DNA of 64,000 nt from Cycas panzhihuaensis (lineage: Eukaryota; Plantae; Cycadophyta), in the NCBI GenBank assembly GCA_023213395.1, contig CM041465.1, forward strand, positions 230,771,741-230,835,740, read 5' to 3'. The translations under genes were made by a program, and so were the position numbers. How positions within the stretch are numbered: the first letter of the stretch is position 1; every line of letters starts with the position of its first letter. Positions 16,283-57,298 of the stretch are shown here, piece by piece. A model generated the notes under the pieces. The model saw only the letters and a list, made by a program, of their open reading frames with translations. It ran no database searches and had not been told where the DNA came from.

Positions 16283-16492
16283 TTATAAAGCTTTTGGTTT
16301 ATGAACTCAAATGAACAGATGAAGGCCTTTAATAAATGAATAACATAAAGTAGACAATAAGTACTTTTCAATAAATTCCAACATAAATCATTTAATTAAT
16401 GTAGTGAGATCAAATGCATATCCTTTTATGATACATGCTTTCCTTAAGCATGGAACTAAATCAATGAATGATTTTATGTAAACCTTAAAAGT

Positions 16493-20014: not shown

Positions 20015-20487
20015 GGGATAAAGTGAGCTAAAGATAATTTGAAATATATATATATGATTTTTGATGAATGCCTTCATATATCAATGAAAAGTAACTTGAA
20101 AGTAAATGAAACTATATGATTCATGAATATTATTTGTAAGATAACTTTTCATGTAGGTTTAAATAAGAATTGAAAAATAATGAAGTGCTTTGAATGCTTA
20201 TGTGCAATAGAATGCACCTTGAAAATGCTTTGAAATCTTGAAATAAAGCCAAATATACCTTCACTATATAGATGAAATAATTAAGAGTAAATATAAGCTC
20301 TTTTAAATCAAAGAAATATGTATATATATACTTGAAATATGCTTATGGAATAAACCTTAAATGAATGCCTTAAAAAGATAATAATTGGCCTAAAATAAGT
20401 AATAAATAAGCTTTAGGAGAGCTTTGAATCAAATTTATAAGCTAAAAGATAAAATCAAAGCTTTAAATAAGGTTAGAATTCACCCAA
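20012..20487 (+). repeat. 476-bp direct repeat, right copy (LINE target-site duplication)
   Basis: Begins inside the poly(A) (AAAGGGAT...) and ends ...TTCACCCAA exactly as the left copy does. Confidence 0.93.
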
Positions 20488-27121: not shown

Positions 27122-27668
27122 TTGATAGAAAACTTTAGTACATAAAAAATATGGTTTTACCAAGTGAACTTTTTGTACTTATCAACAAAATATGTGGCTT
27201 TAGAAGGAATCAAAGAACTCAATAAATCAATAAACTTATATAATTTCAAATAGACTCTTTAAAAGAACTATGCAAGTAATCACAATTCCTTTCAAAAATG
27301 AAAGATACCTTTAGAAAATAAATCAACTTGATGCAACTTTTATAAGTGCAATATGTAAATGATCTTTTGAATAATGATAAATGGAAAAAAATGCTTTCAA
27401 TAAGTGTGTGCATTTAGAATAATTGACAACCTTAAAATGTATGATTTCAGATAAACTTTAAAATATAATAAATATGAGAGTAAATTTTGAATGTAACTAA
27501 GATCTTTTTAACTATGTAAATCTGAAATGAGACTTTTGATGATAAAAATAAAGAATTCTTAAGCTATTGATCTTTCAAGTGAATAACCATAAATTTGAGT
27601 AAAAAATTACTTTCTTTTTCAATGCATGAAATCATTTTGCCTTGATGAAGATATATAATACTGAAAAT

Positions 27669-27990
<322 letters not shown>

Positions 27991-29869
27991 CTTTCACTTT
28001 GGAAAGATAAAAAATGAAGAAGAAACTTAAATAAAACAAATTGTACCCTTTTAAGTTGTAAAACTACTTAGCTTGTCACTTGCTTTATGATCAATTTCTA
28101 CTACAAAAAACTTCAAAGAAGCTTATATAAAAGTCAAATGAAATCCTTAAGTATGTATTATAAGTGATCAATAAGAAATGAAATAAAGTACTCCTTAAAA
28201 AAGAGTTTAGAAGATAAGCCTGATCAGATGTCTTAAATGCTCAAATTGAGTAGCTTTAGAGCTATAATAAGTAATGTTAAAATAAGGTGAAACTACACCA
28301 ATTTGAAGATCAATAAAATATCTAGTCAACAAAACTCACTATTTTGAAAATAGATTCCTATAAGTTAAGATTTTAGTATACCAAATATGCGGTCCTCCTT
28401 TTAAAGCTTAACTGGAGCCTGGGGCTCAAAATATTATGAAATGTTAGTAAAAAACTTATAGAACCATGTAAAAGGATCAAATATACTATATATATCTACT
28501 TAATATACTTTTCAGTTAAAAACTTTGAGAAATAATATATAAAAAATGCGTAATAATGGTAAATTATAAACTATTATATACCTCAAATTTGAGGGCTTAG
28601 ATCACCTATAAAATAGACTTAAAATGTAATAAAACCAACTTAAAACTATAGATCTGTAAAAAAATCTTTCACCAAAATCAGATGGTACTCAATTCTGAGC
28701 TATGAATCTCAAGATATTAAAGAAACTGTAAAAGTGTTCTGCCAAGGTTAATAAGATAGGTAGCAAAAATAAGGTCAAATTTGACCTATTCAAACCTATA
28801 AGATATTGAGTAAAATTAAGTAAAAAATACCTTCAGGCAGTAGTTCTCTAAATCAAGATTCCAACAAATCTTACGGTTTTGAAATCTAATTTCCAGTTGA
28901 GGAGATATAGCTGAAAATGTTAGTACTTTTTATGTAAATATGCTAAAAAACACTAAAGTGTCACTTTCACCGATTAAAATAATGGTTAAAGCAAATGCTA
29001 AAAAATAAAATGAGTAAATAGTGATAAAGTTTGCTAAAAATAAATTACTACAGAATAGATCTGGGTAGAAAATAATCTTTCAGTGATAAAATATAACTTG
29101 ATAAAAAAGTGATTTTGTGAAAATAATTTAAAACGACTTTAAAAATCAATGATTGACTTTAAACTGATTGAAAATAGGTCAAATAAGCTCCAAATATGGT
29201 ATATGACCAGTCAAAATTATACCTCATAAAAGTTTAGATGTAATGGGATAAGTTTCATTAAAAACTAATAAGCCAGTCAAAATATATAACAAAAATTAAC
29301 TGGGTACCCTATGTTTAATAAAAATTAAAAATTAAAAATAAAAGGAAAATACAATGAAAGATTATACAATGATGAAGTAAAAATCACAAATACAAAATAG
29401 AAAATATTGGGGGACTATTTTTTATCCAAAAACTCAAGCTCAATATGAGAACAAGGTAGTATATACCATATAAATAATTATAATGAAGAAATATTTCAAA
29501 AAATTATATATTTATATAGAAAAATATAAAAAAAATTGGTGATTCAATGGAGCCACAAATGAAACCAGAAAATTTTTAAATATATTGATGAAAATATATC
29601 AAATAAATAAAATGTATATATATTTATATATGAGATCTTTCAAATATACTAGAGCAGATATATCAAAGAACCAAGAAATATATATGTTTAAATATGAATA
29701 TAAAAATAAGAAGAACTTGATAATGTAGCTATAACAAATTTTCACAAGATGGACTTTAGAGTATGAGAACTTCTTCCACACAAGATGAAACTTCAAATGA
29801 ATTCCTCTAGTAGGTGGATCGGTTGTAGTATAACTTCTCTAGGAAACTTGTTAGGATGAATATGCACTT

Positions 29870-30235
29870 AATATTGCATAGATCTGAGAAAAAATGTTGA
29901 ATGAATTGACCAAATATACCAAAAATGGTCAAATATTTAACAAAATATGCAGATCTAGAGAAAATATTACATAGATATGGAGAAAAACTTGAATAAATAG
30001 ACCAAATATACAAAAAATAGTTAAATATTTAATAAAATATGTAGATCTAGAGAAAATATTACATAGATCTGAAGAAAAATTTGAATAAATAGACCAAATA
30101 TACCAAAAATAGTCAGATATTTAATAAAATATGCAGATTTAGAGAAAATATTAGATAGATCTAGAGAAAATATTGAATAAATAGATAAAATAAACTAGAA
30201 AATGGTCAAATATTTGACAAAATATATAGATCTTG
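29870..30235. repeat. ~92-bp tandem repeat (about 4 copies) in leader of C
   Basis: AAAATATG(C/T)AGAT(C/T)TAGAGAAAATATTA recurs at 29942, 30034 and 30126 (period 92). Confidence 0.85.
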
Positions 30236-30335
30236 TTGATAAAACTTCATATAGTGATAGGAAACTTGAATATTTATTGATTGTAACTATGCTCCTACAT
30301 AGATCTAAAAAAAGTATTGAATAAATAGATAAAAT

Positions 30336-33300
30336 TGTTAAACTTTAACATAGAAAATAATCTTCAACCACAATAATAATATTAATGAACAAAGAATAAC
30401 TCAACATAATCAAAATGCATTAACATATCATAACACCAAAGACTCAATATGAGCCTTGATGATTCCTTGATGATGTATACTACCTCAGCTACCTTTATAT
30501 ATAAAGGAGGTGGGAGGACATACAAGACAAGTAATGCATGTGGGATAAATACCTTTGTCCTGACCACTGATATTACACCAATTAACTTGACCAATAGGCT
30601 TTTATCTTCTCATACAATATTATAATGACTCTTTGACTCCAAGACTTTAGACTATGACTATTAATCCTAGGATACATCTTACTTAACTATACACACATTA
30701 AACATTATACTCTAATACCTCCCCTTAATGTTTAATGTCAAGACTATAAAAAATGATTGAATACTAAAGACTAAGATGATATTAAATATGGACTCTAATT
30801 TAACCAACATGTACTTTGCTTTCTTTGAATTTACAACATCTTAATCTTAGAAAAATTTTAAATACAATATCTTAGACTTGATCTGGGTCTTCAATCTTGC
30901 AATGTTACCGTTGGAGTAGCCCTTTAGAGTGTCAGTTCTTGAACTTTATCTTCTTTATTTCCATATGTAATTAGAATTCCTTTATTACGCAAAATGTGTA
31001 GTGGATCACAATTGAGCTGACTTATACTTAGTGAGGACCTGTCAGATATTTCTGCATATACCTATCAAAGGTGTCTTCAAGGTGCCCATCAAATATGTCT
31101 TCTATTAGAATTCTGGTTACCACCTATTTGCTTCCACTTTTTTTAGCATGTGAGTGATCAAATAAATAAATGTTAATAATTGGAGATAAGTTGACAATAT
31201 CATCATTATTTAAATATAACAATAAGTCATCATGTGGTGAGACAACATCATCCTCCCATGAAATAATGAATTTATTAAGATGAGTTTCAATTACTTCATC
31301 ATTGTTACCTGTAGCATGTGCATGACTAACAAGATACCCAATTCTCTCTATATCACCTAAGAGATTCTTTGAACCAAGTATAATGAGTATTTTCATGATA
31401 CCTACGTGTACATGCTTCCTAATTATGGATATGCAGAGATGAAATATTAATTTAATATGATTAACCTTTATGAGCAAGTAGGCTATCCAAAATATAATAT
31501 GATCTTGACAACTAAGATTTTGATCATATAGTGTCTTTCCTATGATCTTTCCTTCCTTATAAGAGCCTTTTAGAGTTGTTGTAGGATACACTGTCACTAT
31601 TTGGATTCTTTCAAAGATGAAGATAGAAGATGTGGCTGAATTGAGTGTAATCATATATAGTCTCCAACATATGCATATTAATGTGTATCCCATCCTTATT
31701 TGAATCATGGCTACAAATATATCAATACAAACTAGGACAATATTGCACATACCTTCTATCAGGGTATTTGTGCCTTATGAAGAATTTCCTATAGATGTTG
31801 AAGTTCAAGTTTTTCAACTATCATTTTTCCATCAATCTTGGTGAGGCTTAGATCATTTAATGAATTTAATCCTTCATCAGATTTTAGGCAAGGATTGTTA
31901 GATTCCTGTTCATTTTCTTTAATATCTATGAGAGGATTATCCTTACCAGAATCAAGTTGATTTTTAGCTTTCCTTTTCAACTTCTTCCTTTGGTTCTTTA
32001 TCCTTTTAATACTTCTTTGCATTTCTTCAGTTCATTTTTCTTCTAATTCTACCAACAATTTCCAGGCATCCTCAACTGAGTCAGTATTTTGAAGAATATG
32101 GACAATGAAGTGATAAGAAGAAGGAAGATTATCCTTATCAAAGGCTACAAGTACTACATCAATGGTTATTCTATTTTTCTTTTTTGAAAGTTTCCACCCC
32201 TTCTTCATGAGCCATTTCAGTACCCATAATTATCTTCCAAAGTTTCTTTGTCTTGAATATGCACTCCATCTTAATTTTCTAGATTCAAAAATTAGTGTCA
32301 ACATATTTGGGCAAAGGAAAAGGGAGATTTGATAACCAATATTTATTTTTTTCAGACACAAAAATGATGATGTCACTTAGCTCCATGAGGAAAAGACTGA
32401 CTTAAGTACAACTACTTTGCTCATAATAGAAGCAATTCAATAGCAACAAATACTCTCAAATCATATATCAATATGTCTGGTTCTGAGATGTGATCCCAAT
32501 GCCACTAACTGTTTTGAAAATAGATACCTGGGAGCTAAACCACTAGGGGGTTGCAGATTTAATCTCTATCGATCTAAATAGTACCTTCATTTAATTTCTA
32601 ATCCAATAGGAAACATACTATTTATACCCCAACACTAACCCTTAAATTTTCACAATTCCCATGCATGGTTGGCATCCAACAACAAAAAGTATCAAGCATC
32701 AAATGCTAGATAGACAAAAGCATTGTGCTATAACCAATCTCACTGACATTCAAAAAGGAATGACTACCTTATGGATTGTTTCAGTTACAGCATCAATAAT
32801 TTAAATTGTTCTATTTCTCCTACCTACAGCTAGTAATGGAGAGCCATTCATGCCACATGCCCAACTTAAAGTGTGAAATGATTTAGCCTTCTAGTCATAT
32901 GATAACACATGTATACCTAAAATCTAAATGAAGAAGACGTTGTCACACTCTGTGTGGGACTCTTTACAATTGGTGAGGTGGTGGGAACAATCATTGGTAC
33001 CTTTATTGACTCATAATCTCAGTTGTTTCCAATTTACTCAAGTCCATCATCAACATTCCATGCAAGGAGGATTAAACACATTGACTTGTGAAGTTGAAAT
33101 TTGGGTTTGTAAGTTCTTTTAGAAAATTGTCAGAAGCTAATTTTGAGTTACTAAAGAATAGATGTTGGCATTAGTTTTCCTCAGCTTCCTTATATCTGGT
33201 GGTTTAACCATACTCAGTGCATTCTATTGTAGCTTCACTTCTACAATATTTGTGGATATTAACCAGGGCCATTCATAGAGATCAATAGCTTTCTTCACAA

Positions 33301-34854
33301 CTCCATGAAGACCATCTGTTACAATAATTTTAGTACATCTATGTAGTAGGGTTAGTCCTTTCTGATTACATTAATGATCCCTTGTTTCACTTATACCAAA
33401 GGTATCTAAGATTCATCTCTCACAATACCATAACCATACTACAAGCAAAATACCAGAAATCTATGACATAAACATAGTTTGGAGCTTAACCAAATCAGGG
33501 ACTACATCTATTGGGTTCAATGGCAGGTTGAGACTGCGATGTGATTACTAGTATCAACAGATCTAAAATATGTCTTCTTCAAGTTTTTGCATCCAAAGGA
33601 TGATATCTAAAAATAATTACAAGGGAGAGAATATATATATGTCTACTGCACCAATAAGCACACATGATCGAGAGGTATCCCCAGCTGCCAGATACTATTC
33701 AATGTCAAGCAAGTCTGCCATATCTTTTATCAATGCTAAACTCTATTGCAATTGTATTTACATAATAAAGACATATTTGAAATAATTGCAAGAGTATGGA
33801 TGTTTGTTTTATACAACTAGGCAGAGAAGGAGCTTATGGACAGTCTACAACTTCAGTAGTGCCTCAGACATGCAGATATGCTATCATAAATTTCCACAGA
33901 AATCACCAACCATGCACAGAACTGGTATGAATAAGGGTATCTCCTCACAGTCTCCTTTTTTATAGAATAAAAGAAATAGAGCCAATCAGAGCTAGTACTT
34001 TAAGCAAGTACGACAATAGCTTTCAATAGAACCAAATGGACTACACCTTTTGATACCAGTAAACCCTTAATATTCTAACACAATCCCCCAAGGACAAGTG
34101 TGAAATCTTAACTCTCATAGTTAAGATAAATTTAACAACCATCAATTAAAGAACTCCATGAAATCTTGTTTCATAATCATTTCCTTATAGCAAGGTAAGG
34201 AATAGTGTTACCTAGACAAAATTCTTGTTTTGTATCATACTTGGCAAACTTTATACCGATAATGACTTGAAACTTTTCTTCAATCTGGCACCTTCATGAT
34301 GGAGCCACCTCATTTCTTGACCTTCTTCTTTAGCAGGATGGCCTGGAACTTCACTTCTTTAATTTAACTCTTCAATCTAACAGCCAATCTAATGGAGTTG
34401 TCTTCCTCCCTTATCAAAGAGATGGTGAACCTACACAACAATAGCCTCAACAAACAACCTACTTTGATACCATGTCAAACTTTAACATGGAAAACATTCA
34501 TCAACCATAATAATGATATCAATGAATAAATAGTAACTCAACATAATCAGAATGCATTAACATATCATAGCACCAAAGATTCAATATGAGCCTTAATGAT
34601 TCCTTAATGACATATACTACCTCATCCATCTTTATATACAAAGGAGATGGGAGGACATACAAGACAAGTAATGCATGTGGGACAAATACCTTTGTCCTGA
34701 CTAATGAAATTACACCAACTAACTTGACCAATAGGCTTCTATCTTCTTATACAATATTATAATGACTCTTTGACTCTAAGACTTAGGACTATGACTATTA
34801 ATCTTAGGACACACTTTACTTAACCACACATATATTAAACATTATACTCTAACA
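30336..34854 (-). mobile_element. Non-autonomous Copia derivative E (4519 bp) nested in C
   Basis: LTRs 30336-30717 and 34473-34854 (382 bp each); PBS 34461-34472; PPT 30718-30728. Gag remnant KIKMECIFKTKKLWKIIMG...DSVEDAWKLL (~32050-32310) plus scraps such as GKIIGK. No intact RT or INT. Confidence 0.88.
30730..32340 (-). pseudogene. Collapsed gag/pol remnant of E
   Basis: Copia gag N-terminal motif, ORFs 31789-32022 and 31124-31750 with a protease-region-like GKIIGK; canonical RT motifs are absent. Confidence 0.55.
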
Positions 34855-37800
34855 TATGCCAGAAATGGCCAAGTATTTGACAAAAATATATAAAACTTAT
34901 TGATAAGAACTCTATAGAGTGATGACATCTTAAATATTTGCTAATTGTAGTTATGCTCCTGCATAGATCTAAAAAATATTAGTTATTTCACAAGTATAAA
35001 TCAAGAAATATTACATCTTTAATGAGAAATAATACAAGAAGCTGCTAATAAACTTTGCAGAAAATGAATATAACCAATATTTCCTTACTGTGAGTATATC
35101 TGCTTCAAATGCTAATGGATCTTCTTTCTCTTCAAAGAATATGGATCTTCTTTCTCTTCAAAGAATACTTCAACAGGCCAACAACCTGGCTCTAATACCA
35201 AATATAGGATAATACAATGTGATGGAGATAGAGTAGAGCATAATTAAATAATTAATACATTGTTGCATAAACACATAAGCCTTTATATTCAATCCATCTT
35301 TGAGTGAGTACATAGCAAATTTCCACTATAGGCAGTGTCTAAAGACACTAGGGTTACACACCCCTCCAAATATATAATTTGGGGAATGAGGGAAATTCCT
35401 CAACCCCTAGAATTCAAATAATAATAAAATATTACATAACTTAACTCAAATCAACTTAACCTTACCCTATACTTACCTTCATATGTGAGCACCCACATGT
35501 GTAAATTAGTGGGAGTGGGGTGTGCACTCCTGCGTGAAAGGTAGGAGTGGGATGATGATCATTAACCCCCAATAACTACCTTTACTAAATCACTTGAAAA
35601 ATCATAAAAACTTAAAAAGGAAGTTCTTCAAGAAGTGGAAATATTTATTTTCATTTTGCCATACAAACACTATGAACAAGGTTTCCATGTTTAGGAATAA
35701 TACCTCTAGAAAATACATCCTTTTATAAGTGTCATTTATTAGAAATACTTTGAATCAATACAGTGTGCTAAATGTCTTCTATCTTATCTTATTAAAAGTT
35801 CATGAATGTAATAAATATACTAAAGAAGTAAAATGATTAGATAAGGAGCAGTAGTCAAGCAATTGGTAACCAAGGTAAATAGCTTTTGGACCTTTAAACA
35901 TACTTAGGCTTACCACAATGATCCTTTCCAAATACTATATACTTCTTTTTCCTTGATGATGTATCAATAAAATAAATAAATAAACAAAAATAAATATATA
36001 AATAGATATGAAAAATAACTATAAATGGCATAATTATAAAATTGCATGGTTGGCATAAAAAAATTGAGATCATCAATACTCAATCTTATTTTTTCTCCTC
36101 TACTAATATCTCTATCACACTAGAAGCATCATAAAAACATAAAATAATAGGTTTCACAGAAGGAGAGATATAGTCATAGTAGGGCATGTTGTATGAACCT
36201 TTTCTTTTGTTCTTCCCCATTCCTACCCTTTGGTCAAAGAAAACCTCAAATACGTTATTTTCATATGTTCTATTATGAGATTCCACTTATTTCCATAATA
36301 GGCTTGCATTCAATATTTTTTAAGGGAACTATTTCCATGTCTCAAACCTGATGTCTAACACCCTTTTCACCTATCAAGAAGCCTAAGATTTTAATCTAGA
36401 CAAAGATCTTTAATATTGGAATCACCTATTTTTAAGTGCTTCCTTCTAAGCCTTTCCTCTCCTCACCATTAATGATATCTTGTAACCAGGGATTTGAAAA
36501 TCACTTTATTCATAAAATAATTACCTAGTGTAATTATAACATTTTACATGAATTGGACTTTGATCAAGTGAAAAGAAAATACATGATAGTGAAAACTAAA
36601 ACAGATGTCAAATCTTTTCCTCCCATTTATCTACAAGAGTATGAATCATCCTTACATCCTCATTGCCCCTTTTGCCTCCTACAATGCTTTCAATTTCCTC
36701 TCCATTATCAATGATAGAAAAGCTAGATGCAAAAATATCCTCTTCTTGTCCACCCTAATTACCATACCTTCTTGTTTCTTCACATGCTTAGGTCTTGAAG
36801 ATGAAAACAATCACCATTATTCATATCAACTTGCATTTCAACTTCTAAGGTTTACACATAAATACAAACAAAAGAAAATGAAGAAAAAATTGATCTTATA
36901 TTAAAAAATTTATATACATTGACTGAATTAAGGTCTATTTTTTTAAGGCATTAAAAAATATGAAGAGCCTTGATCGAGAGATGACCTTTATTAATCTAAT
37001 GAAAAAAATATATACAAGTGGAGAATATGACAAGGCCATTTAATTCATTGCAATCCTTGTCATCAATCAAAGACTAATAGAAATTTTAACTCTACTAACT
37101 ATATAGGACCCCACACAAAAGGGGTATAATATAAAATTACATAATTACATCAAATAAGGGAAACATCACCCTATGTAGCCTAACTCACTAACATAACAAG
37201 TATTACTAACATCAAATATAGACCTAGGTATAAATCTATAAGCAAAAATACTATTGCATCAACATAATTCCCCCTTAGATGTTAAAGTCTAAGAGAACTA
37301 AAGATGTCCAATGAATACAACCTAAAAATCTGTAATAAAACCTCTAAAGAACCATGTGCTAATGCCATATAAAATGATGACATAGTCATGAAGCTAAAAA
37401 TTTGATCATTGATTGAAGTACGAAGTGATATCTATAATAATGACCACCCATAACTGCTCAAGAACCAAGGGGAACTATTGGGATGTGATAACATCAATAT
37501 AAATATAAAGTATTTGAAGCCAATGGTCCATTGCTAAAAGGGACCATCAACACTATAATTGAACCCCTAGAAGAATGTCAACCAATGCTAACTACCAAAT
37601 GAACTAACACTAAAATGTTGAACAATATTCTAATGATACTACTATAATATAATAAATACATTAATGCCAACATGTAACATATTGTGTAATTGGGGTAGCA
37701 CAAGATATAACCGCTACCAAATATGCCATTGTAGATAAACATCTATAGGAGAAAGATGTCGTGACAAAAGCAAGAAGCATCTAAAGTATAACTAGAAAGG

Positions 37801-44200: not shown

Positions 44201-45223
44201 CCCTAAACTATTGACACAACATTATAGAAAGGTTAAAGGTGACTACTACAGGATTGCAATTTGAGTCCATAGTATGGTCACTAGAAAATGTTAGTATAAT
44301 GTAGTGTTTACCCTAGATTCCATTAAGAGACTATCTGTGTTTCCTAATACAGAATTGAGGTGAAAACTAGTGCAACATTTGTGAGTTAAATATGAATGAA
44401 AAGATGGAAGTTACTTTAATAAGCAGCTTCATAATATAATATCACCTAAACCCAATGCTTATTAGATTGGTAAGCCTTTTATTCTTTGTAATGCTAGCTA
44501 TTTAAGGAAAAACTACTATCAAACCCACAAAGATAACAACTCCATCAAGTAGATTTCCCCTTTGTTCATTAGAAATATGAAGTGATTTATATGAGACTAA
44601 GTCATTGCAGATAATTATATTTCATTTACTAAGTGAAAAATGTTGGGACTAACCCCAATGTTATTAAAAGGACTGTGTGCCTAGGGCCCCTCAAAGCCAC
44701 CTTTGAGGCCCCCTAAGGAACCTAGACACTCCCTATAGCCACCAGGAGCTGACACTTATTTATTAAGGTATGCGTATTCATTTATTATTGTTATATTTTA
44801 ATATATTTTGAATTATATGTTGGTTAACATGCAGGTCAGGTGATGGCACTTTCTGCCTCCCCAAAATTCTATTTAAAGGGTGGGAATACCTCCCTGGCAT
44901 TTTTTAACACTGCCAATATTCAGAAATCACTTGTTTTCTTAAAATGCATACGATCTAACATGCTACTCTGCTCCTCTAAATCCATCATTTGGTATCAAAG
45001 CTAAAGAGGTACTTGATAATTATTTATGCTGATTTAGCTTCTCATACATCTAGAAAAATAACTGCATATGACTACTTCTTAGAATCCTGGCAAGCTCATC
45101 TATCTACTGGAGAAGATGGTTCAGAGTTTTGACCACTGTGAATGAAGTTCTCATCCTCGAAAGTCGTTCTATAAACTAGTCATAGTGACTTTATTAGGTT
45201 CTTCACTTTTTTATTATTCATAC

Positions 45224-45228
<5 letters not shown>

Positions 45229-45319
<91 letters not shown>
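45229..45319. repeat. (TA)n microsatellite in leader of D
   Basis: Read directly. Confidence 0.95.
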
Positions 45320-45321
<2 letters not shown>

Positions 45322-45822
45322 TATTTATTTGATATTTCTTCTTCAATATATTTACAAGATTTGGAATTGTCTACTGTGTTTATGCCCTCTCTGCATTCTC
45401 TATTTGTGTGGTGTTCTATTTATGGCATCCCTTTATCTGCGTGAAATCTCCCAGCCTAGCCTTTTCTTGGCTCTGGCTCTATGTGGCCTGCTCCTCTTTA
45501 TATCTGCTCCTTCCTGCTCTTATGTCTCACTTTGGTGCTCTAGTGTCTCCCCACCTTAGATAAAATCTTATTGGAGATGTCTATTTGAATCTCTAGCTTC
45601 TATCATGCTTACGATATTTATGAGATCCGTCTGCCACCATTTGGAGTCGCCCATCTGACCTCTTCCCTCACTCATAGCCCTTCCACCAAAATCATCAGAA
45701 TCATTATTGTTTTCATACTTGGAATTGCTCCCATTGTCTGAATACGATTCTCCCCCCCCACCTAACTCAAAGTGTTCCTCTAGTTTATTTGTCACAATTG
45801 TCTTTATTATTATACAAAAAAT

Positions 45823-46098
45823 TCATGAAGGCAACCATAGCTTCTCATGGTTTCTCCAACTCTTAAGATAATAATAAAAGAAATCTGCATATCGAGTCAT
45901 CCAGACAAGGCTAGAAATACAAGGTATCCATTGAAATTGATGCTTTTCAGTCGTGTAATGGTAGATCCAGTTGAACAGATAGAGTCCTCAATATGCTCCA
46001 AGAAAGAAGACATAATTCCCTATCAAATTATCAATATTCTGTGACCTCTATAGTAATACAAGTTAGGGAAGAATAGCAACTGCTTTAAGATTGTAGAT
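45823..46098 (-). pseudogene. ERD2: Captured C-terminal fragment of ER lumen protein-retaining receptor (KDEL/HDEL receptor)
   Basis: 89 codons without indel (46089->45823): LKAVAILP*LVLL*RSQNIDNLIGNYVFFLGAY*GLYLFNWIYHYTTEKHQFQWIPCISSLVWMTRYADFFYYYLKSWRNHEKLWLPS*. This matches plant ERD2 LEAVAILPQLVLLQR..N.DNLTG.Y.F.LGAYRGLY..NWIYRY.TE....WI....GLVQT.LYADFFYYY..SW.N..KL.LPA*, including the native stop. Confidence 0.95.
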
Positions 46099-49089
46099 GT
46101 TTCCTTTATTTTTTGACTTGATCTAATCTACTAATCTCTCTCTCACTGCTACTTCACATCTTATGTCTCTCCTACCTCACATAAAGTGAAGTCGATCTCC
46201 TTTCCTAACACAGGGGCTGATCTAAGTCAATTAATCATTAATTATTTATCATTTTCAATGTTAGCATGTCCAGAGTTATCTAGTAGGAATATCTTAGCAT
46301 AGTTCACTTTTTTATATACTATTGGTTTTTGGTTTATATAGTTGTTGATCCTTTTTGTCCCTCTAATTTCTTATCATGTTTATAAAGGACTTTGAAATAA
46401 CATTGATAGTTTGAAGAAGCTTAAGTTTATATTAAGACCTTCACATATTCATCACAAGGAAGATAACGGGAGTTTTGACATGGTAAACTTACTGGGAGTG
46501 CGAATAATTTCTTAAAACGTTTAATTGATCTATCGTGTACAGGTCGCTCATAAACGAGCATTCAATTTTCGATGACATGTTGATTTTTTTCAAAAGACTA
46601 TAGTAAACTAAATTAAATTTTATTGCATAAAGTTTTAAATCCTTCATTTAAAGGGTTTAATCTTTTTTCAGTTTAGTCCCTGATCACATTCTATTCCATA
46701 TGACCTTCAGCCTGCTTATTAAAAGAGGTCTTGTTCTAAATTAAAAGTTACCTATTTTTTACTTGACGAGTGAATTTATCCTTGTAGCATCAGAGGGGTT
46801 TATATTCTGTAAGGTCTTGGGTTCAATCCATATCTAGTCTACCCTCAGGTTGACAATTCAAGGGGGTTATCTTAAGGATATAACACTTTTTCTTTTATTT
46901 TTTTTTTAATTTATTTTTAAAACATAAGGTACCTAGCTATTTTCTGTCATATCTCTTCACTGGGATATTAGTTTCTGACGAAACCTATCCCATTAGGTCT
47001 AGAATTTTTTGAGGTATAATTTAGACTAGTTATTTACCATATTTGGAGTTGATTTAATATGTTTCTAATTAATTTAAGTCAATCCTTTTAAAAAAATGGA
47101 CCTTTTTTTAGTTTATTAACATAAAAGTACTTGTTGCTATTTTCATTATAACTTTTCTATTACACATCAGAATTCAATAATGTTAGTTTCATTAGGAAGT
47201 TGAATTGTTCCCCTTCAAACTAACACTATTATTTATAAGTTTTAAGGTGTTCTTGCAGACTTTTAAATCCATCAAAGTTGAGGTATATAACATATTTCAA
47301 TTTGTCATTATTGTATAATTTTATATATTATTTCTCTAGTTTTTTAACTGATAAATATATTAAGTAGCTCTCTAAACTATATTTGATCTTTTTACACTTT
47401 TCTATAAGACTTTTACTAGCATTTCATAATATTTTGAGCCCTAGGCTCCCATTAAGCCTCAAAAGGAGGACTACATCTTTTGTATATTAAAATTTTGACT
47501 TGTAGGAACCCATTTTCAAAATGGTTAATTCCATTGAATAGATATTTCATTGATCTTCAAACTGGTATAATTTCACCTTAATTTGACATTGTTTAGTATA
47601 GTTTTGAAGCTGCTCATCTTGAGTATTTAGTATATCTCAACAGGCTTGTCTTCTAAACCTTTTTAAGGAGTTCTTTATTTTATTCCATATTGATAACTTA
47701 TAATACATGCTTGAGGCTTTCATTTAACTTTTATATAGCCTTTTTAAAGCTGATTTGTAGTAGAAATTAATCATATACATCTCAAGCAAGTGATAAGCCA
47801 AGTGGTTCTACAATTTAAAATAGGTACAATTCATTTTTTTTGGAAATCTCTTCTTCATTTTTATCTTTCTAAAGTGAAAATATATACATATATTTCATAT
47901 TTTCAGCATTATAGGCAAAAGGATTTCCTGCATTGAAAAAGAAAGTTATTTTCTTGCTCAAGGTTGTAGTTATTTATTTGAAAATTTGATAACTTAAGAA
48001 TTCGTTACTTTTTATCATCAAAGCCTTATTTCAGATTTGCATAGTTAAAAGGATCTTAGTTACATTCAAAATCTGCTCATATATTTATTAGATTTCAAGG
48101 TTTATCTGAAATTATACCTTATAAGTTTGTCATTTATTTGAAAGGCATACACTTATTGAAAGCATTTTTTATTCATCATTGTTGAAAAAGTTCACTTACT
48201 TCTTCCACTTATAAAAGTTGCACCTAGTTTATTTACTTTCTAAAGGCATCTTTCATTTTTCAAAGGGCATTACATTTTTTTTTTTTTGAAAAAGTATTTA
48301 CTTACATAGTTCTTTTAAAGAGTTTATTATTTATTTCATCTTGCTTAAAGGTTACTATTTTTTCATTCAAGTTTTTCTTTATTGCATAAAAGGAATGCTT
48401 TATAAAACCCTAAGAAAGACCACACTACTAATTAATTTATTTTTTACATTAAAAAAGATAATCCTGAATTGAACCACCCTCTTTTTCCAGCCTTACAAGG
48501 GGAACGGTTAGGACCCTTAAAGTTACCACCCCGTACATGCTAATTGGCCTACTCATATTGGATGAGGATAGACATTAGCTATCAGGTGTATTTAGTGGTA
48601 GGATGAGGTGCAAAACATGTTCCTTTTATGGTGTTTGGAGACCAAGGCTAGACTTGGAGAGAGTGAGTGCCTTAGTTTAAAAATCTTCACCGTTAGATCT
48701 GTCGCTAAGCATAAGTCTGGTGGATGTTGACCAACAGCTCAAGGGGGTGTAAAAACCTTCTTAATAGCCAGCGTACTGAGGTATATAGAGCCTAGCACTC
48801 ACATACCAGTATATTGGGTCCCTATTTTTCCATCTGTAGGTAGGCGCCACTAGACAAGATAGCAATAGAAGGTTACCCCATGAGAAACTTAAACTTAGAG
48901 CCTAGTAGCCTTAATAGGTCCTAGTTTACTTATTCAAAACTTTGGGAAAAACCTTGAGTTATATCTAGAAGAAAATTTTTATATTTAAACCTTTCTTTCA
49001 AAATTTAAATTCAAATACCTTTTCTGATACTCACATTCAACTTTTCAAATCTCATTTGTCACATTTGATCAACATAACTTTAGCTCAAG

Positions 49090-52000
49090 ATGATGTCTAG
49101 TTTTGGAAACTTAATTATCCCAAAATTTGATGGAAACAATTTTATAAATTAGAGTAGGAGGATGAGAACCATCCTCATAGCTAACGACATATTGGACATT
49201 GTAATGATAGGCTACAATGAATTAGGACCAAATCCATCTAATGTAGAAAAGGTTACCTACAAAGAGAATGTCAAAAAAGATAATGAAGCATTAGCCCTTA
49301 TCTTTTGCACACTAGAAGATCATGTGTTTCCAAGTGTCAGTGAATAAGTTAAGTCCAAAGAAGCTTGGGACACCTTACAACTAATATATAGAGGAGCAAC
49401 CTCCTCTAAATTACAAAACTTGAGGAGTAAGTTTAAAAATTTACGTATGATGCCTCATGAATCAATGACAGAATTTACGACCAAAATCTAAGATACTGTA
49501 AACCAAATGAGGTCACTTAGAGATACCCTAACTAAACAAAGGGTAGTTGAAAGGATCCTTAGATGTGTAGGAGCTGTAAGACGTTTTGAAATGGTAGCTA
49601 CTAGTATCAGTGTATCAAGGATCTAAGTACCCTTAGAGTGGAACAACTTACTGCCATGCTCATATTTATAGAAGAGCAGTAAAGTGCAAATGAATCTTTA
49701 GAACATGTCTTTGCTACAAAGGCCCACATTTAATCCAACTCCTAAGCAAGAACCTTAAGACAAAAGGAATCTCCTCTAAGAAGAAAATGTAGAAATTCTA
49801 AAAGGAAAACTAGACAAGACCCTCTATGATATCAAGCCCCTCACCAAAAGAGGCAAGGAGGACCCCAACAACATGAAGATCCTTTAAGAAATACCAATCA
49901 AAGAAGACAAATTGAGAATCATCCTTGCTATCCACATTGCCAAGTGAATTCTCAATCTTTAAGGACAAATAAGGAATATCATGATAACAGACTAATGGAC
50001 AACCCTCCTCAATCCTATAAGGAAAGGGAGAGATCTTTCAATATTGATCGTTCTCAACCAAGAAGTCGAAGCCTAAGTTATAGGAGAAGAGATATATTAT
50101 CTTGTACTTATTTCCATAGAAAAAGTCACATTGAAGATAGATGTTTTTCAAAATATGGACCACCATCTAGAGAACATACTTTAAATTCATCAAAATCAAA
50201 GGTTAATAATAGGTTATTTCTATCTAGTTTTTTTTGCTAAGGAAGAAGAGGATGATAGCTGGTATATCGATTCAGGTTATTCAACCCACATGACCTATAA
50301 AGAATATTTATTTTAAACCTTGGATAAAAATAGAAAAGGGTCAATCATGTTTGGAGACAATATTTCTTATGAATCAGTTGGGAAAGGTAACAGACCCTTG
50401 TTGATTGATATTGGTAAATATAGATACTTAGATGATGTCTTATATGTCCCTGCCCTAAGGAAGAACTTTCTATCAGTAGGATAGATGATGGAACAAGATT
50501 ATAAGGTGATTTTTGATAATGGCGAATGTGTTATCAAAGATAAGAGGAAAAATAAAGCTATTGTTGCCAAAGGTATAATGACTAAAGATCATTTATTTAA
50601 GCTTATCCTCACTCCTTTAGACACCTATGCCCTCAAAATATCAACTACAATGGATAGTGATTTATGGCATAGATAGTTTGGTCACCTTAACTACAAAATC
50701 TTGGCTCTTATGAAAAGGTTGAATATGGTTAATGGTTTACCACCTATTGATGTCAATAAAAAGCTGAGTGAGGGCTTCCTTCTTAGTAAATAACATAGAG
50801 AAAGATTTTTGAATTTTAGCCATCGAGTAACTGCTCCTCTTTAACTGGTATATATAGACATTTATAGACTGATGACTACTCCCTCCTTAGTAGGTGCAAA
50901 ATACTTTCTCACATTTATTGATGACTTCATAAGGAAAATATAGGCTTTCTTTCTAAGATATAAATGAGATGCTTTCGACCACTTTGTTGACTTCAAAACC
51001 TTTGTTGAGCGATAAAGTGGATATTACATCCTTTCTCTAAGATCAGATAATGGGGGAGAGTTTATATCTAATGCTTTCAAGGTTTATTATATCCACCATG
51101 GGATCAGGAGATAATTTACCAACCCCTACACCCCACAACAAAATGGTGTAGTGGAAAGAAAGAATTGAACTATCGTTGAAATGGCAAGATGTATGCTTAA
51201 GGATAAGAACTTGGGCCATGAATTTTTAGCTGACGCAGTTCATATAGCCATCTACCTACTCAATAGATGTTCCACCAAAGCACTTAGGTGGAAAACTCCA
51301 GAAGAAGCATGGACTAGTTATAAATCAAGTATACATCATCTCAGGGTATTTAGATGTCTAGCATATGTCCATATTTCTAATCAAAGAAGAACCAAGTTCG
51401 ATGACCATAGTGTCAAATATATTTTTATTGGCTATAATGAATCTTCTAAATCCCACAAAGTCTATGATCCAAAATTAAGAAAAGTTATGGTGAGTAGAGA
51501 TGTCAAATTTCAAGAAGACTCCTACTACCAAGATAATTAGGAAAAATATAAGGAGATTGCCATTAAATTTGATACATCAAGTAAATTCAAATATGTGCCT
51601 CCTATGTGGAGAAGTATCTAGGAACCAATGAGAGAGGGTACTTTATCTCAACCTCCACCATAACAGCTACCCAAATGGGTTCATCACAACCATGACTTAG
51701 GAAATATATTAGATAACAATAGAAGATCCATATGCTCATATAGGGTCAACTTTACCCTAATGAGTAAGGTACTTAAAATTCATAAGCCTCAAAACTTTGA
51801 TGAGGCTAATCAACATGAATATTAGAAAAAAGCCATGAAAGAGGAATATAAGTCCATTATTAAGAATGATACATGGGAACTTGTGGACTTACCACCAAAG
51901 AAGAAAGATATTAGCATTAAATGGGTTTATAAGACCAAGTTCTACTCAGATGACTCTATCGACACATACAAAGCTAGATTGGTTGCAAAAGGATATGCCC

Positions 52001-53324
52001 AAAGAGAAGGCATAGACTATATAGAAACATTTGCCCCTATCGCTAGGATGGAATCTATTCGAATGATGATGAGTTTAGCCGCCCAAATGGATTGGAAAGT
52101 TTATCAAATGGATGTGAAAAGTGCTTTCTTAAATGGTTATATTAAAAAGGACATCTATGTCATTGAACCCCTCAATTTTGAAGTCAAGGGGGAAGAAAAC
52201 AAAATGTATAAATTAAAAAAGGCATTATATGGTCTAAAACAAGCACCCAGGGCTTGGTATTCCCGCATAGACAAGTATTTTAGAGATCAAGGATTTGAAA
52301 GATCTCATACAGATCCAAACTTATATACTCAAATCAAAGGAAATTCAATATTGATTGTAGGTCTCTATGTGGATAATTTAATTTATATTAGAAATGACTC
52401 CCATCTTTTATATTAGTTTAAAGATACTATGTGTAAGGAATTCGAGATGATAGACTTAGGCCTCATGCATTACTTCCTAGGATTAGAAGTCTGGCAGGAT
52501 AAATAAGGAATCTTCATCTCTCAATGCAAATATATATTGGATCTACTGCAAATATTATGAATGATAAATTACAAACCATTGGCAATACCAGCATAAATTG
52601 GAATCAAACTTTCTAAGATAGATGACTTGACTTCGATTGATCCAACTCTCTATAGACAACTCATTGGTAGCCTAATATATTTGACATCTACTCGACCTGA
52701 TATAACATATTTAGTTAGTGTTGTGTCTAGGTTCATGCAGGATCCAAAGACCTCTCATTGGCAAGCTGCAAAAAGAATCCTTAGATACCTTAAAGGGACT
52801 CTAGATTTTGGGTTATATTACAAAGCTACATCTAAATTTTAATTAATTGGTTACATAGATTCAGATTGGGTAGGTGATGTTGATGATAGAAAGTCTACAA
52901 CGGGTTATGTATTTAGTATGGGATTAGCAGCAGTAGCTTAGAGTATAAAGAAGTAAACTACCATTTCCTTATCCAGAGTTGAGGCAGAGTATAAAGTTGT
53001 AGTTGCAGGAGCTTATGAATCAATATGGCTAAGAAGACTTTTACAAGATTTTTAGATTAAATAATAAGGCCCCACTCAAATTTAATGTAACAATCAAAGC
53101 ACTATCCAAATGGCCAAAAATCTAATATTCCATGGTAGAATAAAATATATTGAGACTCAACACCACTTTATTCGAGAACTTGTACAAGCAGACAAGATCG
53201 AGTTAGCTTATTGTAGCATTGAGGATCAGACAGTAGATATTTTTACAAAGGCTTTGGGAAAGATTAAATTTAAGAAGTTTAGAGAAAATTTGGGGGTCAT
53301 ATGCATTGGGATTATGGGGGAGAA
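49090..53324 (+). pseudogene. gag-pol: Copia gag-pol polyprotein of D, many nonsense mutations
   Basis: gag PKFDGNNF; zinc knuckle CTYFHRKSHIEDRC; protease WYIDSG; LWHR.FGHLN; integrase LRSDNGGEF and PYTPQQNGVVERK; RT YKARLVAKGYAQREGIDY, QMDVKSAFLNG, LYGLKQAPRAW, LYVDN; RNase H DIFTKAL. Confidence 0.95.
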
Positions 53325-56300
53325 TATTGGGACTAACCCCAATGTTATTAAAATGACTATGCACCTTGGGCCCCTCAAAGCCACCTTTGAGGTCCCTAGG
53401 GCACCTAAAGCCTCCCAATAGCCACCAAGAGCTAATGCTTCTTTATTAATATACTCGTATTCATTTATTATTATTATTTTTTAAAAATATTTTGAATTAT
53501 ATATTGGCTAACATGCAGGTTGGGTGATGGCACTTGCTGCCTCCCCAAAATTCTATTTAAAGGGTGGGAATACCTCCCTAGTGTTTTTTAACACCATCAA
53601 TATTCTAAAATCCCTTATTTTCTCAAAATGCATATGATCTAATGTCCTGCTCTGCTCCTCTAAATCCATCAAAAAATAGAAATTTTGTCACAATTTATAA
53701 CCTTTCTTTTAGGTCAACTTGCTTATATAATAAAGTTTTAGCCATTTCTTATCTTAAATTAGATTTTTTGTAGAATTGGCTTGTTATTTTCTTGCTTATC
53801 GTAATTCATAATAAAGTATAAACCCTTCCTTACATTGCTCACGTTGTGGCATATCCACCATTCATTATATTCCATAAAAAAACTTAAAATTTGAATACCA
53901 TATCAAAAAATTAGTTAGTTCATCACCCACCATGTAAATAGTGGCAAATATCCTAGCCTACATGAACAATCACATTAGTGGCCTTTTCTTCATTTGTAAT
54001 TTATATCTCTATACATGCTTTATTAAAGACATTCTAGATTGATTGCATACAAATGAGGTCTTCTCTTTCCCTTCATCATTCTTTGGAAGGTGGGGCCTCC
54101 AATCAAACTTACAATGCAAAATATTCATAAGTACCCAGTGCCATATTAAATTCTTTCAAATTTTAATTAAACTTAGAAACTATCCTAGGATATTAATGTT
54201 TTTTTATCTTCCTAGTTAAACTATATGATTCCTTATCATTGTTCTTGAGATTGGATGGTGTTATATAATTACCCCATGAAAATTTAGCTTTTGACATCCT
54301 TCATGTTGTCCAAGCATAACAAGTCCTCACCAACAATTCTTTACTTCAATATGATATGTAGCACACCTTAAGCAAGAGGCTCCAACTCTACCATAGTCTT
54401 CAAGTTATATATGAATTAACATCACATTTAACCTCGACCATTAAACACTGAGATTATGCTCCAACATTCTTTGTAATAGACCTAAGAAACAATAGATACT
54501 ATTTATCCCATAATAGCTTATGCCTACCAATATTCTTGTTTGTTAACTTTTTATCAAGAAAAACAAATTTAGCCAACCATAAGGAAATGATACCAAGAAG
54601 GATCATTAGGGTAATAGACTGCCATAAAACTAACAAGCTATTAATTATGAAATAATGTGGAGAATTCTTACTAGAAATCTTGTGTTTAGAGATCTATTTA
54701 TTATTCATTTCAATCTAAGTTAATTATGAAAAAGATGACTATAATTCTTAGTGTAGTTAATTTTGTGAATTATGAATAATTCAGGAGAACACTTTGATAA
54801 AGTGCAAGAGAATAGATTAGATCAATCCTACGTTTGGAAGAATTTGGTCCTCTTTAGTACCTAACCTTTTTTATTTATGTTGATAAACACATGTGCATCT
54901 TTCCATGATATTCAATTCTAAATTGAGGAACAAGTTTAAATTTGTAGTAGAATTTAAGTTATGTCTACACATAGCTTTTAAATAGTCTCGTATCTCTTAA
55001 TGGGCTACCCCATGTAGATCTTCCTCATTGAAAACTATAATCTAATAATCTATAGGGACTAACATTAGCTCATGATTTCTATAACCTCTCCTTAATCAAA
55101 CCACATCATTACAAAGGATGGTCTTATGTTGGATGGATTACATAGTAAATTATTCTTTATAATAACAAGCAAGATTTCTTCCTTTCCAAATCCTTCTCTA
55201 ATTTAGGTAATCAATTTATCAAGGAGAAGGCTAAGATCATTATTGGTATATTTGCATGTCAGTTAGAAAATTCACGTATCACTATTCAAAAATATCAATC
55301 AATAGATAGTTAGTATGAGTAATATATGGAATATTACAATTATAAGAGGATGGAACAACATCTTTAAACTTTTAGCATTAAGCTAGAGATTCTATTTTTA
55401 CAACCTATGTGAAGAGTAAATAATTGATGAGATAGGGTAAATATTAAAAGGTTAAATATAAGCACCCAATATAATTCACCATATTGACAGATTTTAAGGT
55501 ATTGTTTAATGGAAATTAGGTATATCTTATTCTACTTTATCAATAAACTATAAGATAACAACTAACCAACAAGAAGTTTTTTGTTGCCTTCATAAAATCA
55601 CTTGATAATTCATAGAAACATAAAAAATAAATTCTTTCATAAGTGAAAATATTTATTTTCTTTTGGATTCACAAACACTCTATAGTAAGGTTTCTATGTT
55701 TAGGAATAATGTGTTTAGAAAATGCATCCTTTTACAAGTATCATTTGTTAAAAATAGTTTGATTTAATAAGACGTGCCAAATATCTTCTATCTCATCTTA
55801 TCAAAAGTTCATGATAGTAACGAGTATACTAAAGAAGTAAACAAACTCAATAAGGAGAAGTAGTCCAACAACTAGTAGTGGAGGTAAATAGATTTTGGAC
55901 CTTTAAAGAGGCTTAAACCTGCCATAATGATCCTTTCCAAATACTATATACTTCTTTTCCCTTGATGATGTATCAATAAAATAAAATACATATGAAAAAC
56001 AACTATAAATGAAATAATTTTAAAATCACACTATTGGCACACAAAATTTAAGATCATCAATATTCAATATTCTTTATATTACTCTACTAATATCTCTATC
56101 AAGTTGGAAGCATCATAATAAACTAAAATAAAATACATAATGGGCTTTATAGAAGGGAAGATATACTCACAGTAGTGTGTCATGTATGATTATTTTCATC
56201 TATTCTTCTCCATTCTTATCCTTTGGTCAAAAAAACCTCAAATATGGATTTCTTATATGTTTTGTTCCAAGATTCCACTCATATCCATAATAACCCTACA

Positions 56301-56900: not shown

Positions 56901-57298
<398 letters not shown>

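Follow-up and report, generated by a model that had tools for sequence, protein, structure and literature searches.

The window, the 64-kb stretch of Cycas panzhihuaensis DNA that was analysed, contains four related LTR elements (A, B, C and D) and a further Copia element, H, that carries host sequence (Table 1). In element D, the two LTRs are in direct orientation and 86% identical, and the primer-binding site (PBS) begins 2 nt past the end of the 5' LTR. The empty site of D is present in paralogue E1, a paralogous repeat at about 24040. Among the gag-pol remnants, the stretch 49261-49401 resembles the gag fragment of A, an SH3-like integrase domain (SH3_retrovirus) is located at 51181-51540 (E 1.6e-27) and RVT_2 lies downstream of it, at 51835-52416 (E 2.2e-62). 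With its LTRs and TSD, its PBS and an integrase domain preceding RVT_2, D is a Ty1/copia element that is complete but dead.

Element A is 3.86 kb long and has LTRs, a TSD and a PBS, its gag being truncated and decayed. Element C carries a nested LTR element (30336-34852) and measures about 5 kb when this is subtracted. With LTRs, a PBS and a PPT, and gag reduced to a remnant, A, B and C partly resemble TR-GAG elements (PMC4350172), but they differ from these in their very long leaders (2.4 kb) with a hypervariable interval, and in that gag is just a fragment; A is within the 4-kb limit of TR-GAG and C, even without its nested element, is above it. Leaders of the elements in the window are 2.2-4.1 kb long and tolerate nested insertions. 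A young, active-looking LINE is also present in the window.

Table 1. Location of the elements, their parts and their cargo, in window coordinates.
Feature	Position	Strand	Remarks
H G16 run	1760..1775	+	C16 on the sense strand of H; far end of H cargo, next to signal-peptide-like kinase codons
H cargo	1776..2958	+	Antisense to H; PBS-adjacent
H PBS	2959..2970 (2970-2959)	-	Exact TGGTATCAGAGC
Element A	11024..14882	+	gag-only LTR element, TSD TATTC
A PBS	11422-11433	+	Duplicated at 11453-11464
A gag fragment	13841-14173	+	Retrotran_gag_2, E 4.2e-7
Element B	15244..22618 (about)	-	More diverged relative; PBS 22285-22274; nested LINE 16487-20490
Element C	25965..35574	-	gag-only LTR element, TSD GTAGT, PBS 35200-35189
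Filling of A	12367-12721		355 bp
Filling of B	21664-21225		440 bp
Filling of C	29547-29350		198 bp
Filling of D	45381-46887		1.5 kb
Element D, whole	44641-53671	+	Ty1/copia, decayed, TSD AAAAA
D 5' LTR	44641..44987	+	TGTTGGGAC...CCATCA; TSD AAAAA just before
D PBS	44990..45001	+	TGGTATCAAAGC; tRNA-iMet type, 1 mismatch
D leader ahead of the filling	45002..45380	+	Homologous to C 29819-29570
D piece a	45381..45751	-	Antisense copy of the 5' part of a putative host mRNA; GC 43%
D C8 run	45752..45759	+ (element sense)	Between piece a and ERD2 3' UTR
D piece b	45760..46099	-	ERD2/KDEL-receptor mRNA, antisense, intron-less
Copy of right-anchor start	46100..46114	+	TTTCCTTTATTTTTT; chance about 5e-4
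D piece c	46115..46887		0.77 kb, with a 15-nt repeat of the right anchor at either side
D conserved leader block	46888..48381	+	Common to A (12722-13838) and C (29349-27187)
D gag-pol remnants	49100..53324	+	Domain and similarity matches
D 3' LTR	53325..53671	+	Followed by TSD AAAAA

A preliminary description of this DNA had noted that A, C and D share a left and a right anchor with unrelated sequence in between, and the comparison bears this out. The only matches to the left anchor pattern in the window are at 12313-12338 (A), 29577-29602 (C, minus strand) and 45329-45354 (D), while zero are expected from shuffled sequences. The T-rich start of the right anchor, TTTCCTTTTATTTTT, is found at 12730 in A, 29334 (minus strand) in C and 46888 in D, and its core, GAAACCTATCCCATTA, at 12820, 29241 (minus strand) and 46980, respectively. 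Element B can be added as a fourth copy, with degraded anchors at about 21710-21665 (left) and 21225 (right). Whereas the flanks are 75-80% identical, no similarity was detected between the fillings of any pair of the four elements, all Smith-Waterman scores being inside the shuffle range (z ≤ 3.6). The interval has really been replaced, and has not just diverged.

The leader of D ahead of the interval contains an expanded (AT)n tract (45215-45328) and then the left anchor, and comparison of the left part of C with the post-PBS region of D gives z = 14. Past the left anchor, A and C share about 27 further bases; in A, the anchor unit is repeated in tandem, and this second, degenerate copy makes up part of the filling. 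On the other side, all four fillings stop at the same T-rich tract, with which the conserved leader block of D opens, and the read abundance of this block is extreme. The hypervariable interval is bounded on one side by a short AT-rich motif that is prone to tandem duplication, and on the other by the T-rich beginning of the conserved, abundant leader block. A PBS-adjacent insertion duplicating the post-PBS segment was considered as the source of the extra 0.7 kb in A and C, and dropped (z ≤ 2.5). No recognisable host gene is present in the fillings of A, B and C; in A and C their GC content (28% and 20%) is that of the flanks (26-27%). Pfam searches returned nothing for the stop-free pieces of the A, B and D fillings, for piece c or for the neighbouring leaders.

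The filling of D is a mosaic that is antisense to the element and consists of piece a, a C8 run, an ERD2 fragment (piece b) and piece c. Read in the host sense, piece a has a 17-nt leader (45751-45735) and an ATG at 45734-45732, which opens a hydrophobic, signal-peptide-like start, MGAIPSMKTIMILMILVEG; this open reading frame start and the C run point to an antisense orientation. The boundary between the D pieces at the C8 run is partly set by the run itself. Piece b, which represents the 3' half of ERD2, contains a 3' UTR (45822-45760), a stop codon (45825-45823) and about 92 codons interrupted by three in-frame stops, all of which are C>T changes, of two Gln codons and one Arg codon. The 3' UTR terminates 26 nt past AATAAA without an A tail and abuts the C8 run. 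A PDB search with the longest stop-free piece, of 54 residues (45826-45987, minus strand; the other stop-free pieces have 15 and 19 residues), matched residues 161-211 of KDEL receptor 2 structures (E 1.4e-5). The same piece is up to 63% identical to plant-type ERD2 proteins, among which the matches P0001 and P0012 carry PF00810. The Pfam domain PF00810 does not reach into the last 54 residues of ERD2, and the identity of the piece rests on the PDB and representative protein searches.

The ERD2 piece runs unbroken over FLG|AYR. At this point, at least 10 mispredicted ERD2 proteins either change from spurious to ERD2 sequence or reveal an exon that was retained or skipped. Because many mispredicted proteins break there, FLG|AYR can be regarded as a conserved intron site; with the site taken from these proteins and not from the donor gene of this species, the piece appears to have lost a conserved intron of its donor. 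The ERD2 fragment is genuine cargo, derived from a host mRNA and located inside a Copia leader. The filling could also be seen as a nested DNA transposon, of the Helitron or Pack type, with a chain of gene fragments, since plant Helitrons typically carry such chains in a single orientation (bioRxiv 10.1101/777037) and a TC...CTAG pair can be found near 45370 and 46840. However, no 3' hairpin precedes the CTAG, the A/T target is absent, and terminal inverted repeats are also absent, save for an 11-nt match with the self-complementary GAATTC. The intron-less nature of the ERD2 piece, its beginning at a poly(A) site and the C-run junction, which suggests reverse transcription, also argue against a DNA transposon, and make it extremely improbable.

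Immediately after the ERD2 piece, a copy of the start of the right anchor is present. The ERD2 piece ends exactly at this copy, and all four fillings end at the tract itself; both observations were counted in favour of the template jumping proposed below. Piece c, the right third of which is moderately repeated in the reads, either arrived later, by target-primed insertion, or stems from a second template excursion; given its TSD-like repeat, at least one part of the mosaic could be a later insertion of the ordinary kind. Neither a flanking repeat nor an A tail is present in pieces a and b. A tRNA or SINE origin of the stretch 46785-46845, which contains a B-box-like GGTTCAATCC, was rejected, as ARAGORN found no tRNA in the window and Rfam gave only noise for 44900-47800.

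Read contigs 88-95% identical to the window cross every internal junction of the mosaic, and come from the read run in which near-identical contigs also occur. The diverged contigs show the mosaic in several copies, implying that it was captured once and then propagated. Read depth is low over the D cargo and very high over its flanks, depth from read contigs being a rough guide that gives no copy number.

In element H, the cargo has a GC content of 40%, compared to 24% in the remaining leader. Its first part (1776 to about 2200) is the 5' part of a SPARK receptor-kinase gene (PF19160, E 9.8e-8, 1923-2132 of the plus strand); as the match starts at profile position 63, the kinase piece may miss the true 5' end of the mRNA. 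The second part (about 2245-2838) is a small multi-pass membrane-protein gene, 70% identical to P0104 in a homologous-protein search, for which the Protein Atlas gave no usable match. Two different host genes are present in H, both antisense, and all identifiable cargo in the window (ERD2, the SPARK kinase and the P0104-like gene) has this orientation. The antisense ERD2 fragment of D and the antisense SPARK-RLK fragment downstream of the PBS of H had been reported in the preliminary description, and both identifications stand. The cargo of H is located at the PBS, in an unrelated leader, while that of D starts about 380 bp past the PBS. The slot position is common within one scaffold, not across Copia families; as the positions in H and D differ, the two may not share a single mechanism.

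Four runs of at least seven C or G residues occur in the 64-kb window, where shuffled sequences contain 0.22 on average; two of them are in the LINE and the other two are at the ends of the D and H cargo. Reverse transcriptases of the MMLV type preferentially add C to the ends of cDNAs before moving to another template (PMC3877366), and we infer that the runs in D and H reflect such C-tailing at mRNA 5' ends. The likeness to SMART-type template switching lies in the non-templated C at the RNA 5' end and in the jump to another template that follows; SMART-type switching differs in being known from MMLV enzymes in vitro, not from plant Copia enzymes in vivo, and in the shorter length of its tails. 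C8 and C16 exceed the usual length of a non-templated tail, and the extra length would need later slippage. Piece a and the kinase piece of H appear to be 5'-complete and 3'-truncated, the opposite of LINE-made pseudogenes. A processed pseudogene made by a LINE was rejected for pieces a and b, since ERD2 is tail-less at its poly(A) site and piece a and the kinase piece are truncated at their 3' ends; of the mosaic, piece c alone is compatible with it.

We favour, with a probability of roughly 0.55, an origin of the mosaic in which reverse-transcribed pieces of host mRNAs were gained by template jumping and then inherited by a small subfamily, with no cargo system involved. On the sense strand of the element, each piece would correspond to the first-strand cDNA of a host mRNA. 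The mRNA of piece a would have been copied from an internal point to its 5' end, where a non-templated C run would have been added; spliced ERD2 mRNA would have served as the next template, from its poly(A) site into the coding region, and synthesis would have returned to the element at the T-rich tract. The jumps would be made by the element's own reverse transcriptase, inside the particle, either by a growing plus strand copying host RNAs or by a growing minus strand copying host cDNAs. The mosaic would later have been passed down in the small subfamily, and in H a like product would have formed beside the primer-binding site. Replication would thus yield the antisense polarity, and a right border that is fixed, as by-products of C-tailing at template ends and of a jump-prone oligo(U) tract that may act as a pause site.

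The same polarity could result from secondary events and a survival filter. After integration, retrocopies or filler DNA would enter the dispensable leader of master copies at random places and in either orientation, through LINE-mediated insertion or break repair, and sense inserts would truncate the element RNA by their poly(A) signals or splice sites, so that only antisense ones propagated. Piece c, within its 15-nt direct repeat at a T-rich target, looks like a target-primed insertion, and the two AATAAA signals in the ERD2 piece would terminate a transcript if oriented in the sense direction; the long leaders with their nested insertions, and the LINE, are also consistent with such a filter. 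Pieces a and b do not fit as well, having no flanking repeat or A tail, and LINE products would be the reverse of the 5'-complete, 3'-truncated piece a and kinase piece. Moreover, the two pieces of D are joined end to end via a C run, and the leader sequence was replaced by the filling, not interrupted by it. We regard a survival filter as unlikely.

The preliminary description went further, proposing that these leaders repeatedly acquire host pieces at a defined position with an orientation bias, and that the cargo could function in trans-silencing or as a decoy, or reflect selection against sense cargo. Its interpretation is partly supported. Acquisition of host pieces is seen in D and H and was not recognised in A, B and C, and the position is defined within the scaffold of A to D, but not between D and H. 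The window contains only two independent capture events and so shows no statistical orientation bias on its own. In its strong form, a dedicated exchangeable slot would be kept because transcripts or siRNAs from its antisense cargo would silence host genes or act as decoys for the silencing machinery. The interval does occupy a shared position in four related elements, with differing content, every identifiable cargo is antisense, the cargo-bearing version exists in several copies, and siRNA cross-talk between captured fragments and donor genes has been documented in maize (bioRxiv 10.1101/777037). On the other hand, three of the four elements hold no recognisable host cargo, and where there is cargo it decays like the remaining element, with three C>T stops in 92 codons. 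The cargo version is low-copy, the empty scaffold being 100 to 10,000 times deeper in reads (a rough measure), and none of the listed read runs that hold the stretch is recorded as RNA. The C-run signature offers a mechanical cause for the polarity, making a selected function unneeded, and the cargo of H is positioned unlike that of D. A slot kept for silencing or as a decoy is very unlikely.

Gene capture by retrotransposons is known; antisense cargo within the leader, and C runs at what are probably the 5' ends of host mRNAs, set the present case apart. Chimeric multi-gene retrocopies produced by template switches of LTR elements are established in Drosophila and vertebrates (PMC5131818, in which maize Bs1 and rice capture cases are also cited; see also the 2026 review, PMC13317346). 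The proposed template jumping in D resembles this LTR-mediated retroposition in several ways: an element that keeps both LTRs and the TSD contains partial, intron-less copies of host mRNAs; more than one gene is present in a chain; the copies take the place of internal element sequence and do not interrupt it; and the chimeras spread as non-autonomous or defective elements. Pieces a and b of the cargo also lack a separate TSD and poly(A) tail, piece c with its 15-nt repeat being the exception. In the published model, a minus-strand switch onto a co-packaged mRNA leads to sense-oriented cargo (PMC5131818). This prediction failed here: the identifiable cargo is antisense, is located in the leader, and carries a C run at the probable 5' end of the host mRNA. 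PMC5131818 and PMC13317346 say nothing of C runs, of an antisense orientation or of cargo at the PBS or elsewhere in the leader. Maize Sireviruses, which are also Copia elements, capture pieces of exons, commonly of 3' exons and in some cases more than one in the same element, and siRNA cross-talk with donor genes is possible (bioRxiv 10.1101/777037); the maize survey differs in showing no orientation bias, in contrast to the antisense cargo in the window.

More tentatively, the Copia elements of this genome may be subject to a regular, defined replication error, in which first-strand cDNA of host mRNAs is synthesised directly on the sense strand of the element. This would happen at the PBS and where an oligo(U) stretch of the leader causes pausing; non-templated C tails would mark mRNA 5' ends, and jumps between mRNAs would be end to end. 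Such a distinct pathway, for which 'antisense transduction' would be a suitable term, is possible but doubtful at present. Consistent antisense polarity in leaders, together with C runs, would point to a reverse-transcription step different from the minus-strand switch. The combination of a C run, a host 5' end and end-to-end joints would then provide a simple sequence test that can be applied to any genome. If antisense RNA derived from the cargo were expressed, siRNA cross-talk with host genes could still follow; and if antisense transduction is true, the start sites of host transcription would be preserved as a fossil record.

The window (31% GC) is AT-rich plant DNA built from old, nested retroelements, which were mapped by self-comparison, boundary reading and a scan for primer-binding sites (PBS). 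Four related LTR elements, A to D, carry a left and a right anchor in their leaders, with a filling between them; B is the fourth such copy, with degraded anchors. Pol is absent from A. The empty site of D is visible in a paralogous repeat near 24040. This repeat, of about 4 kb, is present as two copies that are 77-80% identical (23724-25947 plus 35579-37260, and 44303-44640 plus 53672-57642); they are interrupted at different sites by different Copia-type insertions, C and D, so that each copy is the empty-site control of the other. The element nested in the leader of C contains a 208-codon open reading frame with no Pfam match. The LINE nested in B (16487-20490; RVT_1 at 17229-18110, RNase H at 19474-19734) has a GC content far above its surroundings and is flanked by direct repeats of 485 bp (16487-16971 and 20006-20490; 98% identical), much longer than target-site duplications normally are.

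Table. Positions of elements and cargo features (TSD, target-site duplication)
Feature	Position	Strand	Details
H		minus	PBS 2970-2959, exact; copia-type gag start (…NSNYANW…) near 480
H, C16 run	1775-1760		C on H sense strand; far end of H cargo
A	11024-14882	plus	TSD TATTC; LTRs TGTTGGGG...CCTACA
A, PBS	11422, second copy 11453	plus	iMet type
A, gag fragment	13841-14173	plus	Retrotran_gag_2, E 4.2e-7
B	~15244-22618	minus	More diverged relative; PBS 22285-22274; nested LINE
C	25965-35574	minus	TSD GTAGT; PBS 35200-35189
LTR element nested in C leader	30336-34852		PBS 34472-34461 (minus); LTRs 380 bp, 89% identical
D	44641-53671	plus	Ty1/copia, complete but decayed; LTRs 86% identical; TSD AAAAA; PBS 44990-45001; integrase SH3-like domain upstream of RVT_2
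D, piece a	45381-45751		Across C8 run from ERD2 piece
D, C8 run	45752-45759		C on element sense strand; adjoins ERD2 3' end
D, piece b	45760-46099		ERD2 fragment, antisense to element
D, piece c	46115-46887		Bracketed by 15-nt repeat of right-anchor start

Both anchors sit where the preliminary description had placed them and are not chance matches. The fillings measure 355 bp in A, 440 bp in B, 198 bp in C and 1.5 kb in D, and they are unrelated, as had been claimed: every pair scores within the range of shuffled controls (z <= 3.6), while the flanks align at 75-80%, indicating that the interval was replaced and not just mutated. A and C are still alike for about 27 bases past the left anchor, the filling of A is partly a further degenerate tandem copy of the anchor unit, and D has an expanded (AT)n immediately before the anchor; these features make the left border an AT-rich minisatellite prone to slippage. 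On the right the border is sharp: in each of the four elements, the filling stops where the tract TTTCCTTTTATTTTT has its left edge. With its right border fixed, the interval is a genuine hotspot of replacement. Pausing promotes strand transfer as a general rule, and by that rule the oligo(U) tract that forms the common border would point to a site of pausing and jumping. Repeated reloading of the interval with host cargo is not shown for A, B and C: no host gene was found in their fillings, and those of A and C have the base composition of their own flanks.

In D, the filling does contain an ERD2 coding fragment of the KDEL-receptor type (piece b). A stop-free piece of 54 residues, the longest of the frame and the only part used as homology query, matches residues 161-211 of KDEL receptor 2 structures and is up to 63% identical to ERD2-type proteins; the matches P0001 and P0012 bear PF00810. 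The frame extends upstream (...AVAILP*LVLL*RSQNIDNLIGNYVFFLGAY*GLY...), and all three stops arose by C>T from the Q, Q and R codons that ERD2 conserves. In many mispredicted database ERD2 proteins, genuine sequence replaces junk precisely at AYR; others have junk from FLLG to AYR or lack the exon LVLLQR...FLLG. These breakpoints reveal a conserved intron, and as D is uninterrupted across its position, the source was a spliced mRNA. The homology stops about five codons into the next upstream exon, which means that no retained intron forms the end of the fragment. The stop codon is followed by 63 nt with two AATAAA signals, and the copy ends 26 nt past the second, at the expected cleavage position, with no A tail.

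Directly after the ERD2 piece, the start of the right anchor is repeated (46100-46114). This sequence has 11 matches with at most two mismatches in 128 kb (both strands), giving a chance of about 5e-4 for a copy that lies only a few bases from where ERD2 ends; it follows that the slot was an exact fit for the original cargo. Piece c, beyond this repeat, arose either by later target-primed insertion or in a second excursion that started at the same point of re-entry; it gave no match in Pfam, Rfam or a tRNA search. Near the right anchor it contains a tRNA-like stretch (46785-46845) with a B-box-like GGTTCAATCC, for which neither ARAGORN nor Rfam made a call. On the other side of ERD2, piece a has 43% GC (26% in the flanks) and opens, in host sense, with 17 nt of leader followed by an ATG and a hydrophobic stretch resembling a signal peptide; no gene identity was obtained from its sequence.

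The leader of H, a different Copia, has 40% GC from just below the PBS to 1776 and 24% in the remainder. The SPARK fragment reported there was recovered (plus strand, antisense to H, E 9.8e-8), together with a second antisense cargo gene, whose product, a small multi-pass membrane protein, shares 70% identity with P0104 in a match that runs on past an internal stop. The kinase frame is open up to the C16 run, where the encoded sequence, ...KKPTWLLVSWWCL.FLLVAG, resembles a signal peptide. The leader of a neighbouring Copia (4420-6615, minus; gag 4419-4028, PBS 6626-6615) is 2.2 kb long with patches of 36-40% GC; it possibly holds cargo, and the pieces tried against Pfam gave no match.

Four C/G runs of at least seven occur in the 64-kb window (shuffle mean 0.22), two in the young GC-rich LINE and two at the cargo ends of D and H. 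Both of the latter are C on the element sense strand and lie at the putative 5' end of a host mRNA. On reaching the end of an RNA template, reverse transcriptases of retroviral type extend the cDNA by non-templated nucleotides, preferably C, and then jump template (PMC3877366). The element-sense cargo strand would then be first-strand host cDNA; in D, the enzyme would have reached the 5' end of one mRNA, added the C tail and jumped to the 3' end of the ERD2 mRNA. Two cargo pieces appear to be complete at the 5' end and truncated at the 3' end, whereas pseudogenes made by LINEs show the reverse; this fits internal entry followed by run-off. The sequence is compatible with two routes: a growing plus strand copying host RNAs, or a growing minus strand copying host cDNAs. 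Runs of 8 and 16 C exceed usual tails and would require later slippage. In A, the LTR end and PBS are tandemly duplicated at 11405-11464 (CCTACATTTGGTATCAAAGC then CCTACATCTGGTATTAGAGC), a further sign of error-prone events near the primer site.

Contigs from low-coverage genome skims of three related organisms were placed on 44900-47300. Their summed depth, which gives no copy number, is 10^3 to nearly 5x10^4 over the PBS-proximal leader and the right block, and about 0.5-110 over 45467-46600. Run X2 has, besides near-identical contigs, others of 88-95% identity that cross the joint of piece a, C run and ERD2 UTR (45566-45813) and that of ERD2 and piece c (46053-46210, 46074-46385). The joint of left anchor and piece a (45334-45559) is crossed only in runs X3 and X4, from the other organisms. 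Two deletions mark one contig that covers ERD2 and piece c. Diverged contigs crossing the joints indicate a mosaic made once and then copied, present in few diverged copies, presumably as part of D-type elements. The leader block after the slot (46925-47300; A 12760-13650; C 29300-28216) is hugely abundant in the skims of all three organisms (depth up to ~49,000; most of the cargo has single- to double-digit values) and is common to an autonomous Copia and to gag-only elements with LTRs unlike those of D; candidates for its nature are a cis-acting signal for packaging or dimerisation and an independent repeat.

Antisense capture of spliced host transcripts in Copia leaders is real in this window. 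The proposed defined position stands for the A-D interval, with its fixed right border; the cargo of H lies at the PBS of an unrelated leader, so the position is not Copia-wide. As to an antisense bias, there are two independent events, and pieces of one chain share orientation by construction, so the window alone cannot show it. A silencing or decoy role finds no support, the cargo decaying by C>T like silenced repeats, its bearers being rare relative to the empty scaffold, and none of the runs listed for this stretch being RNA. LTR-mediated retroposition with multi-gene chimeras and internal sequence replacement is established (PMC5131818), and template-switch capture in plants has been reviewed (PMC13317346); neither source mentions antisense polarity, leader or PBS position, or C runs, the features seen here. 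Fragments captured by maize Sireviruses have no orientation bias (bioRxiv 10.1101/777037). Further literature searches brought up no closer system.

Some contigs, of about 90% identity to the window, have an alignment confined to the last ERD2 exon (45826-45975), with divergence setting in at the stop codon, shortly beyond it, or before ~45996. They may represent the ERD2 gene(s) in the genomes of these species, in which case the cargo has diverged from its donor by about 10%.
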